A stretch of 63,178 nucleotides of DNA, the filler included, from Lenisia limosa (Eukaryota > Protista > Breviatea), in NCBI GenBank assembly GCA_001655205.1. It is 13 parts of 13 records of this genome, joined end to end, with 100 filler letters (N's around TTAATTAATTAA, not from the genome) between each part and the next. Parts side by side here need not be neighbours in the genome. Positions count along the whole stretch, not along the records: positions 1 to 13,870 come from LPNZ01010020.1; 12 more parts are not named here. One strand, written 5' to 3'. How positions within the stretch are numbered: position 1 is the first letter of the stretch; each line of letters begins with the position of its first letter. Below, piece by piece: positions 1,171 to 13,510 of this stretch. The notes under the pieces were generated by a model. The model saw nothing but the letters and a program-made list of their open reading frames with translations, did no database searches and had not been told where the DNA came from. A program made the translations under genes and the position numbers.

Positions 1171-4302
<3,132 letters not shown>

Positions 4303-4488
4303 GCCTCTTCAACAAATTTACGTTTACCAAACTAAAATCGGTTTCAAAATTATCCTCTCCTCTCAACAAAATCACTGAATTAAGCTTTACGAAAAAACGA
4401 GCCAAAAAAAACACAAAAATAATCGCAAAATGTGATTACTCTGTCGACAAATGAAAGCAATCAAAAATCAAAAAGTTGGCAAAAATCA

Positions 4489-4819: not shown

Positions 4820-6200
4820 TTAAAACATGAGACACGAACACCCGAAGAATATAAAAAAAAGAAACAGAATACAACTATGGAGACATGGTGGGGTGATTGT
4901 TGGCGCTCTAAAAGGTAAAAGAAACTCATAATAACGATTTTCAAAACACGACAAAAGATATGAAAACGAGATTTCATACAAAATACGACGTAAAACCTTG
5001 ATCAAATACGAAAACAAGAAAAAAGATTATGAAATACGAAATTTGAACAGGAAATACGACGTAAAACCTTTACCAATGTGAAAAACGATTTTTGAACAAC
5101 AAATAATGGAAACGAAATACGACAAAAACGATTCGTTTTTTTGAGAAATGAATTAAACAAATAATGGTAACGAAAAACGAAGAAAAACGATTTTCAAATA
5201 CGAGAAACGATTCTTGAAAAACGAAAACGTTTTTTTGCAAAAAAAAAACCAAAACACGAAAAACGACTATGAAAAACGAAAATTGAAGAAAAACGACGTA
5301 AAACCTGAAAACGATTGTCAAGCACAAAGAACAAAATTTTAACAAATAATGATACATTTTTCTAATACGAAAAACAATTTTTGAAAAACGAAAAACGATT
5401 TTCAAAACACGAAAAATAATATGAAACAAGAATTTCTGATGAAATACGACGTAAAACCTTTACCAAATAGGAAAAACAATTGCTAAACACGAAAAACAAT
5501 TTTTGAAAAACAAATAATGATGACGAAAGACGTAAAATCTTCTTCAAATACGAAAAACGATTATTTTTACAAAACGAAAAAAGGATTTTCAATGCACGAA
5601 AAATAATATAAAAACGAGAATTGAATATGAAATAAGATTAGAACCTTTATCAAATAAGAAAACACGAAAAAAGAGTATGAAATACGAAATTTGAATACGA
5701 AATACTACGTGAAACCTTTACCAAGACGAAAAGCGATTGTTAAACACAAAAAACAATATTTGAAAAACAAATAATGGTAACGAAATACAACAAAAACGAT
5801 TATTGAGAAACGAAAAACGTTCTTTTACAACATGAAAAACGACTTTCAAAAACACGAAAAAGGATATTAAAAAGGAAATTTTCTTACGAAATACGACGTA
5901 AAACCTTTATCAAATACGAAAAACGATTGTCAAGCAAAAAGAACAACTTTTGAAAAACAAATAATGATAATGAAAAACGACGAAAAACGGTTTTCAAAAC
6001 ACGAAAAATTATACGAAAAACGAGAATTTCTTACGTAATACGATGTAAAATCTTTAACAAATACAAAAAACGATTGCTTAACACCAAAAACGATTATTGA
6101 AAAACAAATAATGATGAAAGAAGAAAAACGATTTTTGAAAACGAATATTGAGAAATATAAGACGAAAAACCTTTATCAAATACGAAAAACGATTGATAAA
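4820..6200. repeat. Degenerate A-rich satellite-like tandem array
   Basis: About 9 copies of the core aaatacgacgtaaaacctttaYcaaatacgaaaa at irregular ~70-240 bp spacing; strongly A-skewed. Confidence 0.85.
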
Positions 6201-9200
6201 CACGCAAAATGCGATTTCAACCCAACACTAGGATTGAGAGCCACAGGGGTTCTCAGGTTAGTGGGGCTTGGGGGCACTTCGGTTGGCTTGGCTGGGTCAG
6301 GCAGCGGAGTCAAAGTCTGCAACTCTGACTTCTCTTCTGTGCCAATCAGTTACTAAAACATACTTTTGAAGTAAAAGCCCCCTCCAATTAGACCAACCAG
6401 AGCTAGGGGATATGGTGATAGAGGGGGCCTTGGCCAGGACACTTTGGTCGAAAGCTCGGGACTCGACCCCGGCAGCAATAGCGGCAATTGCATCGTGGAA
6501 GAGCGCTAACCGGACCTCCTGTTCACTGATAACGTTTTGCAACTGATTAAACGTCACGTTAAGCGTGGAGGCCTCAAACTGAAGAAGTTGCAGCAACTAC
6601 AAGGTCACTGATGATAGGAATTATAATCATTTCATATCATATACTACCACATGTATAATTTATATATCATATCGATCATATATATTATGTTAACAAGAAC
6701 AAAAGAAAAATGATTCACAATTGTTGACAAAATGCGAGTCTCACCTCTCTGAGTGACAGCCCTTGCTGCTGCAAAGAGTTCTAAAAGCAGTAAGCTTATG
6801 AAAAGAAGGTGGACTTGGGTATGAAGTTACTATACTATCGTATTATGTGATATCCCACTGGTTGGATATAACACGATCCCTAACACACATGTTTTCGCTT
6901 GATATTGAGTCGTTTTTGCTCTTCCCAGACATCGGAGAAGGAGGCACTCAGGATTGTAACCGGGAAGGCGATAATGAACACTCCAGAAAGCATGGTTACC
7001 GTTCCCATCATTTTTCCAGTAACAGAAATGGGGTATACTGCAATAGTGAAGAAAAAGTCGTGTACATTACATGAATATATCATATGATATGTATCACGGG
7101 TAAGTAACAACAACAAAAAAACAAACCCCAAGAGAATGAAGGTGAGAAAGCATCATGACAAAAAAAAACACCTCAATAAGATAACTTGAAACAAACATTG
7201 TGGAAAAAAAAAAAAAANNNNNNNNNNNNNNNNNNNNNNNNNNNNNNNNNNNNNNNNNNNNNNNNNNNNNNNNNNNNNNNNNNNNNNNNNTCTATGAAAA
7301 ACCCATTTCATGATATATATTTTTTTTTTTAAAAAAAAAACCCTATCCCTGCAAACCATCACCGTATCCAACACCCATGATGGAGACGATCACATACCAC
7401 GCAGTCGAGGGAATTGACTGAAAGGGACTGATATCGTAAGCCAGAAAAAAATCTGACAATGATATCATACAAAACAAAAAACCCAGAAAAATTATGATTG
7501 TTCAATGATTCCCTGTTCCAATGATAGCAAGAGACTGAAAGGAGAACTAAGATCAATTAGATATTATATAATATGACATATTATATTATATGTACTAGAT
7601 GTAGTATGTCATATATTTACGGGCTTGAAAACCAAGGACCAGAACCAACATTTCTATCAAGAGTCCCCTACTACGTCTCACCAAAAAGTTCCATCAAAAA
7701 CCGGGTTTTCCTGTCCTTGTTTGTAGTACCATCGCTCTTCATCCTAAAGAATAAAACGATGCTGATCGGAAGAATAAAAGGATCAGTTCTGGAGTAGCAT
7801 GTTTCAATATGAAAAGGGACAAGCACTTTAATATCCCAAAAAAAACTATCTCATAACGTGTTCCAGACTGCGCTACTATTAATGGATAGTTACNNNNNNN
7901 NNNNNNNNNNNNNNNNNNNNNNNNNNNNNNNNNNNNNNNNNNNNNNNNNNNNNNNNNNNNNNNNNNCTGTTTATATTTAGAATAGATTTTCTGAAAAAGT
8001 CCAATCAAGTATCATAAAATAATTATAATAATATGAACTACTAATAGCTAATGCTATTGTATTATTTGGACGGGTCCTTAGTTTTTCTCGCAACCCCCAC
8101 AAATATCTACACGAAGTGATATGCTGCAAAGGGAAAACTGATTGGAAAAGACGAACCTCATTGAACTCGCACGAGCCAATTTCTGCGTAGTACACAGCAG
8201 CCGACATAATGACGACCGCAATGACTAGAAGAAACATCAGTAAGAGCAGTGCGTCTCTGCTCACACTCATTGCCCGCTTCATAAGCTACTTCGTCAAGAA
8301 CAGCGGACGCGTAATATGGTGGAGAAGTGGGATACCCAATGAAACAACGAAACCAATTTAATGGGTTTCAAAAAGGAAAAGAAAAGTCCACCTACATTGA
8401 GACTATGGGCCCATGATGCAAGTTTGAAGACTCGTAGCACTCGCGTCAATCGGACGGCCCTCATGATGATGAGGGCTGTGAATTGAACATCCGAGCCACG
8501 AAGGACAAGCTACACCGTCAGAATGAGAAAGAAAGAATTGACAGGATGTTACTGAAAGTTCGTTTGAGCTCATTTAAATGGAATCATCCCAATTGTATAG
8601 AAGATAGGATTTCAAAAAATATTTACCTCGAGATAGTATGGTAGGATGGCAAGAAGGTCAACAACATTGTGGAATCCTGTTGTTGTTAAAAAGGGGCCTA
8701 AGGTCAAGACTGAGCAATGGAAAGCCCCAACAGGCAGCAAAACACTGTGACTTCGAATATCAATATGATGGGAGCAAATCAAGTCAGGAAGCCTACGAAA
8801 AGCAAATTGGGCTTTATTGGGAGCAGTGAAAAGACGGACAAGGTACTCTATGGAGAAGTTGATAATGGCAAAAGACTCCAAAATAAACCATGGGGAGTCG
8901 TATGGCCTATCTTTCTCGTAAATGGATGGCAGGGACTGGAGAAACAAGGCAGTGGTGGATGCAAGGATGAGGATGAGGATCCATATGTTGATAGCCATGC
9001 CCTAACAGTGATGAGGAATGAATGCGAAAAAAGCCAAGAAGGCTCTCGAATGGCATGTATTAAGCCTACCAGCTTGGATCCTTGCGGTGATTCAAAGAGG
9101 TAATGAATCCTGTGCTTTGTTGAAACATTGGCGGCTTCCGGGGGAGGGTAAAATTCATCGCAATGAGTAGGTGGAGAAAACCTGTTTCCAGGGACCGGCG

Positions 9201-9320
9201 CACGTTCGTTATTCAATGATGAAAACTCCTTTGACGGTGAATATGCTCGCCCTAAACAGTAACAGAGTCCTCGGGGGAAAAAAACACAAACCGGCAACGG
9301 CCGAGTTTAGTCCAATCATT
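6180..9320 (-). CDS. Voltage-gated K+ channel-like protein (6TM), multi-exon
   Basis: S1-S3 INIWILILILAS..WFILESFAIINFSIEYLVRLFTAP..VVDLLAILPYY; S4 RAVRLTRVLRVFKL; S5 LLLLMFLLVIAVVIMSAAVYYAE; pore SPFQSIPSTAWYVIVSIMGVGYGD|VYP; S6 TGKMMGTVTMLSGVFIIAFPVTIL. No T1 domain seen. Ends approximate. Confidence 0.92.
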
Positions 9321-9735
9321 ACTGAGAGTGTGTTTCAAAACACGTTTACGCCGTTTAAGTCATTATTTCATACAAAATCGACAATCTAAGATATATATAA
9401 AAGGACAAGAACTCTTTGTATAGCAAATCCCTATATTTTGCGTGAATTTATGTGCTAGAATTTTTTATGCTTCACAATCAGGTCGCAATCAGGCAAAGGC
9501 AAAGGGCAAAGGGGTAAAGGCGGCGATTTGGCGATTTGTTGGGGCGAAGCAATTCTTCAGCCGCCGGGCAACATGCTGCGGGGGCGCTCACTGAGTAATC
9601 AAAGTAATCAAAACGTCATCGTTTTGGGGCTTTTTCGCCACACCCATCTTCCTCTCTTGCTACCTCTACTAATGCACTAAACATTTATTAGTTGGTTTCC
9701 AAGTAGATTTGAGAAGATATTAGAAGCCTGTCACT

Positions 9736-11598
9736 ATGTTTGTTTCACAGTCCAAGCTTGACGGCTTGAAAATGTACAAGTACTCGGGTTGTGACCACTC
9801 ACTGCTAAGAAAATATGTAATGGAAGCCATGTATGTCAAGTTTGTCGAGGCCCTTCCCCTTTGGCTGGCGTAAGTTCCTTTTACTTTTGTTCCCCTCTCA
9901 CGCACACCAGTCCAAACTTGATGACCTTAACGGGCCTGTTCCTCCTTATTATCTCCAATATCATTTTTGCAATTTGTTCTCCATCAATGGATATGGAACT
10001 CCCCGGTTGGACTCTTCTCTACGCTGCCGCGGCCCTGCTCTCATACATGTTTCTTGACAACTGTTTGTCGGGGTTGTGCGAGGTGTTGAGCGTTACTATT
10101 TTGCCTCCTTTGACTTTTTTATTGCATAGGTGATGGAAAACAAGCGAGGAGAACAGGAACGTCTTCTGCCCTTGGTGAATTTTTTGATCATGGTTGGCTG
10201 ATTGGCTAATTTTGTCAATGGTACCAGCTGAATTGATTTGGTGAACACACTCATTACCTGAACTGTTTCCTTGATTTCTCAATTTCAAAATTAATGACAC
10301 TATATTTTTTTAATTGTGAGATTTCTTGAGCTTCCTCTTGGTGAGGATAATGAATCAAAAACAAGGGTCTGACTTACAGGTTGCGATGCCATCAATATGG
10401 GACTTATTGGTCTCAATATCTGCACCGTCTTTGGCCTTGGATGTACATGGCAAGCGGTCATGCTCTGCTTCATTTGCTTCATCGCGTTCTGGGGAGCAAC
10501 TTGGGAGGAGTCTGAGGGGTGGTATTGGAGCAACTTGGGAGGAGTCTGAGGGGTGGTATTGGAGCAGCTTGGGAGGAGTCTGAGGGGTGGTATTTAATTA
10601 CGGAATCGTTGACGTTTTAGGTATTTCACTGGTACAATGTATCTTGGACTAGTCAATGGTCCGTCAGAGGGCATTATGTCCCTCATCTTGGTGTATATTT
10701 TTACATTCTTCTCAGGTGGGTACCAGTTGCATAACATTTCCAATAAAGTTACAATTTTTCAGAATTCACTAATTCAATGAAGGTGTCGGTTTCTGGCAAC
10801 AGCCGTTAGCCACCGTACCCATCATTGGGCATTTCGTGAGCTTTACCATGCCCCTCAATCACTTTCTGGCTTACGGCAGCATTGTAAACGCTGTTGTCGG
10901 GCTCGTTGTCAAGTGGGGGGAGGGGGTAGTCCTAAACAGGCAATTTTTTTGGTAAACATTTACCATTAAGCGGACACGCAGCCTATAGTAAGCTTCAGGA
11001 GAAGTACAATGGTTTAGAACTCTCACAAAAGGCATTTCATGGACTTGTGCTTATGGTAGGTGATAAACACAACAAAATTCAATTGCGTTTGTAGTGTGGC
11101 TTTTCAAAACTTAACAATTTCTTGCTTACCAGTGTAGAATATCACGCCAGTGATTGTGGGATTTTCATCCATTCTCTACGCCTACTATTTGCCCGATGTC
11201 CTCACAGAAAATGCGCATATCTTTATGTATATGGCCAACTTTCTCTTCTCATTCCTCACGGTAGGCCGTGAGAAAAATATAATTTTGAACTTTAGGGACG
11301 TCTTATTGTTGCACGGCTCTGTGCACTGCCATACCGAGCTTTCCAACCCGTTGCCTTGGTCATGCTTCTTCCTTTCCTCAATATGATCCTTGACCAAGTA
11401 TTTGGTGTTGGAGTAAGTCACTCTTTCCTTCTGGCTATCTGCTGCTCCACCACTGTCGGGTTCTACTCGATCTTTATTTATGAGGTTGGTTTGCTGTGGT
11501 TTTGTTGCTTTTGTGTCAGAGTTTCCAGTTGGGTTGGAGAAATTCAAATCGTCTTACTCTCAGGTTCTTCTGGAAATGTCTACATATTTGGGTGTTGA
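9736..11598 (+). CDS. CEPT1: Choline/ethanolamine phosphotransferase (CDP-alcohol phosphatidyltransferase)
   Basis: YKYSGCDHSLL, PNLMTLTG, LDNC|DGKQARRTGTSSALGEFFDHG and WEE|YFTGTMYLGLVNGPSEG across GT-AG introns. Confidence 0.93.
10493..10594 (+). repeat. 3 x 34-bp tandem repeat spanning an exon/intron junction
   Basis: ggagcaacttgggagga|gtctgaggggtggtatt repeated three times with one mismatch. Confidence 0.95.
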
Positions 11599-11848
11599 GA
11601 TCCTAACTGTTCCCAAAAAGTAGGTATTTATTTCAACGATTTGTTTGTTTCTAATTTCTTACATGGATTGTTTAATGTTATTCGATCTGTGGTCGTGTTG
11701 ATGATCGCTCAGAGGAGATGTTTGAATCCCTAACTCTGACTGAGATTATGGAGTCACAGTTTACCATTCATTGTCAAATTACCCAGCTCACTTCCAAACT
11801 AGAAATCCATGGACTGACCATTGATATGATGGACGAGTTAAATAGGCT

Positions 11849-13510
11849 TTATTTTCTAAGGAACGTAGACAAGATGTCAGCAGTGGAAACAATTCCAACG
11901 GGCCGATTGTCATCATCTACTGCGATGCAACGGTGGACCCGGTATCGCGCAAGTCGAAGCTACGGAGTTATAATCCAAACCGCCAATGCAACACATGACT
12001 GTGATTCTACAAAGTGGATTTTCGAGAAGTGGTTGTCCGCTGAACATACCAAAACTTTTTCAAGGGACTCGTCAGCTTGACATGTGACAACCTGTTCTAA
12101 TCGCTGGAGGGGGNNNNNNNNNNNNNNNNNNNNNNNNNNNNNNNNNNNNNNNNNNNNNNNNNNNNNNNNNNNNNNNNNNNNNNNNNNNNNNNNNNNNNNN
12201 NNNNNNNNNNNNNNNNNNNNNNNNNNNNNNNNNNNNNNNNNNNNNNNNNNNNNNNNNNNNACAAAAACCAGATTTAAAAAAGTAAGGGAAATGTTAAAAA
12301 CTCCAACAAATTAACGGTCACAACCCCATCATAACGCTTAGAACCGTCCCAAGCATACGACCCCCGAGGGGATCAAAGCTGGATGGACAGAGCGTGCACC
12401 AGACCAGACAATAGAAAAGAATACTGTCAAGCAAACTAGGACTATTCTAAACCATAAAAGTAGTAACGGTAAATAAAAACTGGCTGGGCAGACACAAGGC
12501 ATAAATATAACAAAACAAACACGCAGGCAGCAAACATTGAAATCAAAGCACAAAATTTACCAATATCACTTGAAGTTGTTGCTCTGTTTCCCTAACACAC
12601 TTTTGAGCTCAATTTCAATGCTTCAGAAATGGGCATTTGAAGGTTATGGTAGGCCTTGTGCCGGGCCAAGTCCTGAATGGTCACTGAAAAAAACGGAATA
12701 ATCATCAATTTCAAACTAAGCGCCACTGTATTCCACCATCATACAATGGTATCATATCTTGTATTGTGTCGACGCACATAAACAAACCCAACAATCCAAC
12801 CTACCATTACATCACGTTTGGAGTAGACATTAACTACCGCCCCACTGTCGTCCACAACTGGGAGGGCTGAGACCCCACGTTCGGATATAATTGTCAGCGC
12901 CTTGATTATCACAAATGGATTATTGTTTATATCATATATTTTATGAAGCCTTTGCTTTTTCCTTATTGAATCTCCCCCCCTCCCCCCGCCCACATCTATC
13001 AATGGGGTGTCCAATGTGACAACACTGATACTATCGAAAGTTCCGAGGCCTAAATTGCCAATTTTGAAAGGGAGATCGAAACCCTGTGCTGCATACTAGA
13101 GTATTTAGGTAAGTACAGAAAATAAATAAAAGAAATACTTATAAAAGAAAACTCCCGATAAACCCTCCATTCAGCTTACATGAAGAGCAGTGTATTGTAG
13201 AATACGCGAGTGGGTAATTACTTGAAGAACGATTCTATCGTCATCCGTCATGACTGGAAGTCTGTATGGCGATTATTCTAAGGGTATCTAAAGATATATC
13301 ATATATATTACAGTATAATATAGTATAATACATATCATATGAAATACTATATTTGTATATCGGTGAAACACAACTTAATTCCAAAAAGAGGTGCTTCACC
13401 TTCACCCACCTGTGGATTTTTGCTTGATCAAGGAAGGTTAATGCGTGAAAAAGGTTTCGATCCGAGGAAATAGTTTCAAGAGGCTTGTTGCTTTCTCGCA
13501 TATCTGGTGA
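11849..13510 (-). CDS. SNF4/PRKAG: AMP-activated protein kinase gamma subunit (CBS domains), 5' part lost in gap
   Basis: TISSDRNLFHALTFLDQAKIHR; GNLGLGTFDSISVVTLDTPLID; ERGVSALPVVDDSGAVVNVYSKRDVM; DLARHKAYHNLQMPISEAL; VVTCQADESLEKVL|LRLARYRVHRCIAVDDDNRPVGIVSTADIL..*. Confidence 0.9.

Follow-up and report, generated by a model that had tools for sequence, protein, structure and literature searches.

A Kv-like channel gene of the protist Lenisia limosa with glycine at the S4 ion site of its selectivity filter

Results

The channel gene and its surroundings

The window analysed here is a stretch of 63,178 nucleotides from the genome of Lenisia limosa. On its minus strand lies a Kv-like channel gene of 12 exons, which runs from an ATG at 9319 to a predicted TGA at 6178-6176; translation of the spliced model gives 461 amino acids, with a reading frame open across all 461 codons. 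The introns measure 40 to 413 nt and are all of the GT-AG type; the shortest, of 40 nt (9252-9291), is found just downstream of the start codon. Directly 3' of the gene is an A/T-rich degenerate tandem repeat array (5184-6141; periods of 20-22 and 147 nt), and the predicted stop codon lies ~35 nt upstream of the end of this array. On the other side, a divergent plus-strand gene begins at 9736, so compactly spaced that only ~400 nt separate the 5' end of the channel gene from the next start codon. This neighbour (9736-11600) was judged by eye to be CDP-alcohol phosphotransferase-like (CEPT/CHPT-like), and a Pfam scan of one of its short exons gave no match. Farther away are an ABCC-type ABC transporter-like gene (about 2000-4400, minus strand), with a weak, sub-threshold ABC_membrane hit (E 2e-4), and a CBS-domain, AMPK-gamma-like gene (12739-13501, minus strand; CBS hit, E 1.6e-5). 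A tRNA scan found none.

Exon 1 (9292-9375), delimited by an RNA joint (9250/9291) and by translation, holds the 5' UTR, the ATG (9319-9317) and the first 9 codons. The RNA contig covers it as far as 9375 and carries an in-frame TAA (9322-9320) directly before the ATG; the N-terminus ahead of S1 therefore comprises only ~70 residues and includes no T1 domain. Exon 2 (9070-9251), supported by RNA joints and by alignment to relatives, encodes this short cytoplasmic segment and ends with the pre-S1 motif HRIHYLFESPQGSKL; Pfam returned no match for the N-terminal stretch. The voltage-sensing part follows in exon 3 (8797-9001; S1 and S2 with the conserved acidic residues E112 and E122), exon 4 (8627-8676; S3 with the conserved D145), exon 5 (8396-8509; the S4 voltage sensor with R172, R175, R178, R181 and K184) and exon 6 (8157-8285; the S4-S5 linker and S5 with the invariant E228), the last three being defined by RNA joints. 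Pfam Ion_trans matched S1-S3 (E 3.4e-6, on exon 3) and also the S4 segment, and the intact S4 string reported in the initial annotation, RAVRLTRVLRVFKL, was found at 8423-8461.

The pore is divided among three exons. Exon 7 (7682-7743; RNA joints 7427/7682 and 7742/8156) encodes the extracellular turret DEERWYYKQGQENPVFDGTF, a motif that also occurs in relatives, exon 8 (7357-7427) the pore helix and selectivity filter CPFQSIPSTAWYVIVSIMGVGYGD, matched by Pfam Ion_trans_2 (E 0.003), and exon 9 (6889-7037) the VYP sequence and S6 with the gate motif AFPVT (6955-6969; P306-V-T308). Exon 9 corresponds to an RNA contig piece at 6889-7037, and its VYP is joined to CPFQSIPSTAWYVIVSIMGVGYGD in the mRNA, as had been proposed. 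The C-terminal region begins with the short exon 10 (6745-6780; RNA joints 6596/6745 and 6780/6889) and continues in exon 11 (6398-6596; RNA joints), which is probably helical and has a comparable tail in relatives. A Pfam scan of exon 11, the largest C-terminal exon, gave no significant match and hence no cyclic-nucleotide-binding domain of the HCN/CNG kind. Exon 12 (6176-6336; RNA joint 6336/6398 and translation) encodes a Pro-rich tail that ends at the predicted stop codon; the RNA evidence was examined down to 6250, and the last ~25 codons and the 3' end of the coding sequence are accordingly a prediction.

The filter codons in DNA and RNA

The pore exon encodes ...WYVIVSIMGVGYGD, and minus-strand translation across the pore reads ...STAWYVIVSIMGVGYGD. 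The filter is thus SIMGVGYGD where the canonical sequence is TMTTVGYGD, as the initial annotation had noticed. On the minus strand, W267 (7399-7397) is followed by Y268, V, I, V, S272 (7384-7382) and I273, then by M274 (ATG, 7378-7376) and G275 (GGT, 7375-7373), and finally by V276, G277, Y278, G279 and D280 (7360-7358). The pore had been placed at 7358-7430, which does contain the pore exon but includes three intron bases; the Ser with which the pore string had been made to begin came from reading through the acceptor, and the mRNA has Cys there, from a split codon (TG/T).

Two sets of contigs from the same study were compared with positions 6250-9750: DNA contigs of run X1, which is probably the source of the assembly, and spliced polyA-RNA contigs of run X2, from another sample. 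Neither set differed from the window by a single letter. Ten introns, all with GT-AG ends, were skipped in the RNA contigs. The eleventh joint, 7037/7357, was derived by contig arithmetic, the direct joint having been dropped at a repeat: within an RNA contig, the S6 piece (6889-7037) is separated from the S5 piece (8157-8285) by 133 letters, exactly the combined length of the pore exon (71 nt) and the turret exon (62 nt), and the joint follows from this spacing. Moreover, the replacement of Thr by Gly takes two base changes (ACN to GGN), and a single-base error is therefore no explanation. Since the DNA contigs and the spliced RNA contigs agree, the filter variant is confirmed as real, and the gene as expressed and spliced, at contig level. 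Of the outcomes that would have undone the original observation, an assembly error hiding a Thr-Thr pair was not seen in contigs of either sample, and lack of expression is contradicted by the spliced polyA RNA.

There are two N gaps, one in each of the introns that flank the pore exon. The first, of only ~95 nt, is spanned by a DNA contig, and at the second the contig ends on both sides continue into A/T-rich sequence, which makes an alternative pore exon hidden inside the gaps unlikely. Over the S6 exon/intron boundary (7006-7067), run X1 also contains extra short DNA contigs whose flanks differ and which lack one base at 7039; they are probably bubbles formed by the alleles of a diploid genome.

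A T1-less Shaker-like channel

A phmmer search with the S1-S3 open reading frame against 1.84 billion representatives gave 102 hits, with no ortholog and no self-hit among them; a word search with the same query gave no match, its length rule excluding full-length proteins for a query of exon size. Scored with phmmer against the relatives fetched, the spliced model reached up to 235 bits on single-domain proteins, the best of which (P0005) is 45% identical to it. Mantamonas, Lithocolla, Chromosphaera, Corallochytrium and further protists supply its nearest relatives, proteins with PF00520 and PF07885 as their only domains, and Diphylleia and Rigifila are also among the nearest sources. The top S1-S3 relatives, P0001 (1748 aa), P0002 and P0103 (Diphylleia rotans), are single polypeptides that string together three or four 6TM K-channel domains, every one of them with a GYG pore, and so represent concatenated Kv-like channels in protists.

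A search seeded with P0005 retrieved T1-less proteins first, including that of Corallochytrium, and then T1-bearing KCNA proteins of cnidarians and vertebrates, while the best solved-structure matches of the pore exon were Kv4.2, Kv1.2, Kv1.3, Shaker and Kv2.1. In a quick maximum-likelihood tree, the model fell, without a resolved position, at the base of the K-channel clade, with P0005 and the proteins of Mantamonas beside it. The end branch leading to the model, 1.23, is about twice the median of 0.62, a length that could reflect relaxed constraint.

Shaker-like Kv channels without T1 are known from choanoflagellates (PMC11287247). By the definition given there, the Lenisia channel agrees in having an S1-S6 core near animal Shaker and no T1, but departs in its filter, which is not canonical. 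Two marks of the true Shaker family (Kv1-Kv4) are absent, namely the T1 domain (BTB_2, PF02214) and the PVP motif of S6. In a survey of S6 sequences, PVP was present in 16 of 17 T1-bearing Shakers, whereas the T1-less relatives mostly have P-x-T/S/A. On these comparisons, we assign the channel to the T1-less 'Shaker-like' Kv channels of protists. The lack of T1 and the AFPV in place of PVP, which had both been singled out as oddities, are indeed present, but they are common to its T1-less relatives and are traits of the family, not peculiarities of this gene. For the same reason, we rejected the PVT motif as the mark of a silent subunit.

Departures from conservation at the inner end of the filter

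Thirty-five alignment columns are conserved to at least 85% among the 102 relatives, and the channel retains 31 of them. Among these are E112, E122, D145, R172, R175, R178, R181, E228 and W267, as well as V276, G277, Y278, G279, D280, P283 and P306; the voltage-sensor charges (R172, R175, R178, R181, K184, E112, E122 and D145) match columns conserved at 86-100%. The four misses, W268Y, T272S, T274M and T275G, are all located at the inner end of the filter and run consecutively in the list of conserved columns (p ~6e-4). They differ in kind. The equivalent of W268Y is also seen in Kv4, T272S retains the hydroxyl, and the equivalent of T274M occurs in ~3% of the relatives. At the fourth, the V-G-Y-G-D of the T-V-G-Y-G-D signature is present and Gly stands for the Thr found in 97% of the relatives; in the first two protein sets searched, none of ~184 real pores had this Thr-to-Gly change at the site. 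As aligned here, the outer filter and its support (W267, V276-G-Y-G-D280, P283) are kept, and only the inner end is remodelled.

Natural pores with glycine at the same site

The pattern W-[WY]-x6-G-V-G-Y-G-D, searched as degenerate DNA, has one match in the window; elsewhere it matches at least 120 loci among metagenome contigs, together with 99 among GTDB genomes. When the 219 matches listed were scored with a profile of the relatives' pores, at least 187 proved to be real K-channel pores with xGVGYGD at E < 1e-8, and 188 at a looser listing cut-off. The Gly is therefore no exceptional natural event, and the idea that Gly before VGYG is unprecedented was rejected; replacement of Thr by Gly at site S4 is an uncommon but recurrent natural variant. 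These Gly-type pores belong to bacteria and archaea, to eukaryote-like contigs and to Shaker genes of corals, with Methanobacteriaceae among the carriers, and they keep the same spacing from the pore-helix Trp as the Lenisia filter. Among the matches listed, most have ...T(M/I/V/L)TGVGYGD, and the residue before Gly is T, A, S, V, F, G, P or L, with Thr in 131 of 187 and Met, as in the Met-Gly pair of the Lenisia channel, in none of the 187.

Pfam runs on ten Gly-type loci revealed at least five architectures. They comprise 6TM Ion_trans proteins (Novosphingobium), a Methanobrevibacter channel, GluR0-like SBP_bac_3+Lig_chan proteins (Verrucomicrobiae, Planctomycetaceae, Acidobacteriota), 6TM+RCK proteins (Spirochaetales), T1-less eukaryote-like 6TM proteins and a T1-bearing Shaker. 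Example loci, in the numbering of our set L001-L219, are L137:956-1687:+, L129:1018-1836:+, L126:1681-2799:-, L167:814-2160:+ and L112:1511-3148:+; of these, L137 encodes a protein of 244 aa from Novosphingobium profundi. The T1-bearing Shaker with a Gly-type pore is anthozoan (L059:1684-2979:+), and among 116 of its relatives (P0216-P0331) the counts at the site before VGYG include T 40, A 35, S 33 and G 5.

Among the matches listed, the Gly-type loci are at most 33% identical to the Lenisia channel, which is lower than its canonical relatives, and from this we infer that its Gly arose independently of the other Gly-type pores. No paper that discusses natural xGVGYG channel pores was found in the open-access literature.

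Discussion

The Thr before VGYG has been central to debates on knock-on permeation, on selectivity and on how slow inactivation is coupled to the gate. To our knowledge, this residue has been probed almost only through engineered mutants, with results that disagree between channels. The gene described here is an otherwise well-kept Kv channel gene that carries Gly at this position in nature and is expressed. By itself it adds modestly to a family already known, but Gly, and in cnidarians also Ala and Ser, recurs at this position in many unrelated K+ channel families, so that natural Gly-type channels, this one included, offer ready material for testing the role of site S4.

In canonical channels, site S4 is made up of the carbonyl and the hydroxyl of Thr (PMC11251424). 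In KcsA, the T75C and T75G mutations lead to the loss of the S4 ion and lower the occupancy of S2, and in a review's account of the T75G mutant, its inactivation rate is normal while its recovery is much slower (Matulef 2016 as reviewed in PMC7337057). Shaker T442A and Kv1.5 T480A are still K+-selective, selectivity is lost in MthK T59A and NaK2K T63A, and KcsA T75A has lowered selectivity in simulations (PMC11251424).

By analogy with these mutants, four subunits of the Lenisia channel would assemble one voltage-gated pore in which sites S1-S3 and the carbonyl ring of site S4 stay intact, and in which site S4 would lack, on the side of the cavity, the four Thr hydroxyls whose ring normally closes it. 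The innermost K+ would then be held by four carbonyls and water. On the precedent of KcsA T75G/A and Shaker T442A, such a pore is expected to conduct and still to prefer K+, with a smaller unitary conductance and a change in slow inactivation or in the recovery from it, and its K+ selectivity may be weakened.

We therefore consider the gene product to be, on balance, probably a working voltage-gated, K+-preferring Kv subunit, with an open-bottomed S4 site, a lower conductance and changed slow inactivation, because the outer filter and the voltage sensor are kept, because Gly recurs naturally at the site, and because of what the engineered mutants do. The canonical splicing, the polyA RNA, the open frame, the 31 of 35 conserved columns and the at least 187 natural Gly pores all speak for this reading. 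On the other hand, no current has been reported in the searchable literature for any natural Gly-type channel, and the loss of selectivity in MthK T59A and NaK2K T63A indicates that the outcome depends on the channel. The Met-Gly pair, unmatched in the 187 pores listed, the lack of an ortholog among the search hits, the long branch and the predicted 3' end also count against it.

The product may instead be a regulatory ('silent') subunit, unable to carry current as a homotetramer and serving only to tune a canonical paralog within heteromers, in the manner of Kv5/6/8/9 with Kv2 or of NvShakR with NvShak in Nematostella. The clustering of the filter changes and the long branch would fit such a role, fast-evolving regulatory Shaker paralogs exist in cnidarians (PMC3519636) and in mammals (PMC6279357), and the same position of the filter varies among cnidarian Shaker clades. 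However, the known regulatory subunits need T1 self-incompatibility and this channel has no T1, its P-x-T gate motif is a family trait, and Gly-type pores are present in prokaryotic channels, which are assumed to be homotetramers of a single gene product and which lean against a purely silent subunit. We regard this role as possible but rather unlikely.

A weakly selective or even Na+-permeable voltage-gated cation channel, in which M274 and G275 remove site S4 and lower the discrimination between K+ and Na+, would be in line with the abolition of selectivity by Thr to Ala in MthK and NaK2K and with its decrease in the KcsA T75A simulations (PMC11251424). Yet the closest relatives tested, Shaker T442A and Kv1.5 T480A, stay selective, and the GYGD sequence and the supporting Trp/Asp network are intact here, so that this reading seems unlikely. 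In its boldest form, it would have the replacement of Thr-Thr by Met-Gly make of a Kv-type channel a voltage-gated cation channel that by nature has three ion sites and selects K+ weakly, one member of a widespread, unstudied x-G-V-G-Y-G class whose permeation or inactivation would be distinct, a conjecture that we offer as speculation and would ourselves doubt.

Decay of the gene, or a non-conducting product under relaxed pore selection, might be suspected from four departures within the most conserved stretch, a branch above the median and the lack of an ortholog that would show constraint; we think it very improbable, as the frame stays open through 12 exons, every splice site is canonical, the transcript is both spliced and polyadenylated, and the conserved columns retained include every voltage-sensor charge and GYGD. 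As for an error of assembly or sequencing in the filter codons, which a draft assembly with N gaps in both flanking introns might suggest, it would require two adjacent base changes and has to contend with independent RNA contigs, from another sample, that give the same exon without a letter different, and its probability is close to negligible.

Comparison with known systems

In its overall design, the channel comes closest to the T1-less Shaker-like Kv channels (PMC11287247). It shares with them an S1-S6 core nearest to animal Shaker/Kv1, the absence of T1, a short N-terminus with the pre-S1 motif, the P-x-T/S/A of S6, the turret PFQSIP and a C-terminal tail, probably helical, that carries no annotation; the difference is that their filter is canonical by definition, whereas this channel has S-I-M-G for T-M-T-T. 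The animal Shaker family (Kv1-Kv4) provides the best solved matches of the pore exon, the Trp-Tyr pore helix (in Kv4) and the same voltage-sensor charges, but the Lenisia channel has no T1, PVT versus PVP and Gly versus the Thr of site S4. KcsA T75G/T75A/T75C, Shaker T442A and Kv1.5 T480A have lost the hydroxyl at the same position; these, however, were made in the laboratory by point mutation of filters that are otherwise canonical, and the Lenisia channel is natural and carries, in addition, the equivalents of T74M, T72S and W68Y.

HCN channels, whose filter reads CIGYG, also do without the Thr hydroxyl at the filter site. The comparison with them, made from the start, survives as a loose analogy, no cyclic-nucleotide-binding domain having been found in the scanned C-terminal exon. 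In the Kv2-related silent subunits (Kv5/6/8/9), the second Pro of the S6 PXP motif is altered; here too the likeness is one of analogy only, the Lenisia channel being without T1 and its S6 motif being a family trait. The natural Gly-type pores, at most 33% identical to it and with Met before Gly in none of the matches listed, nevertheless share with the Lenisia channel a Gly at the very same site.
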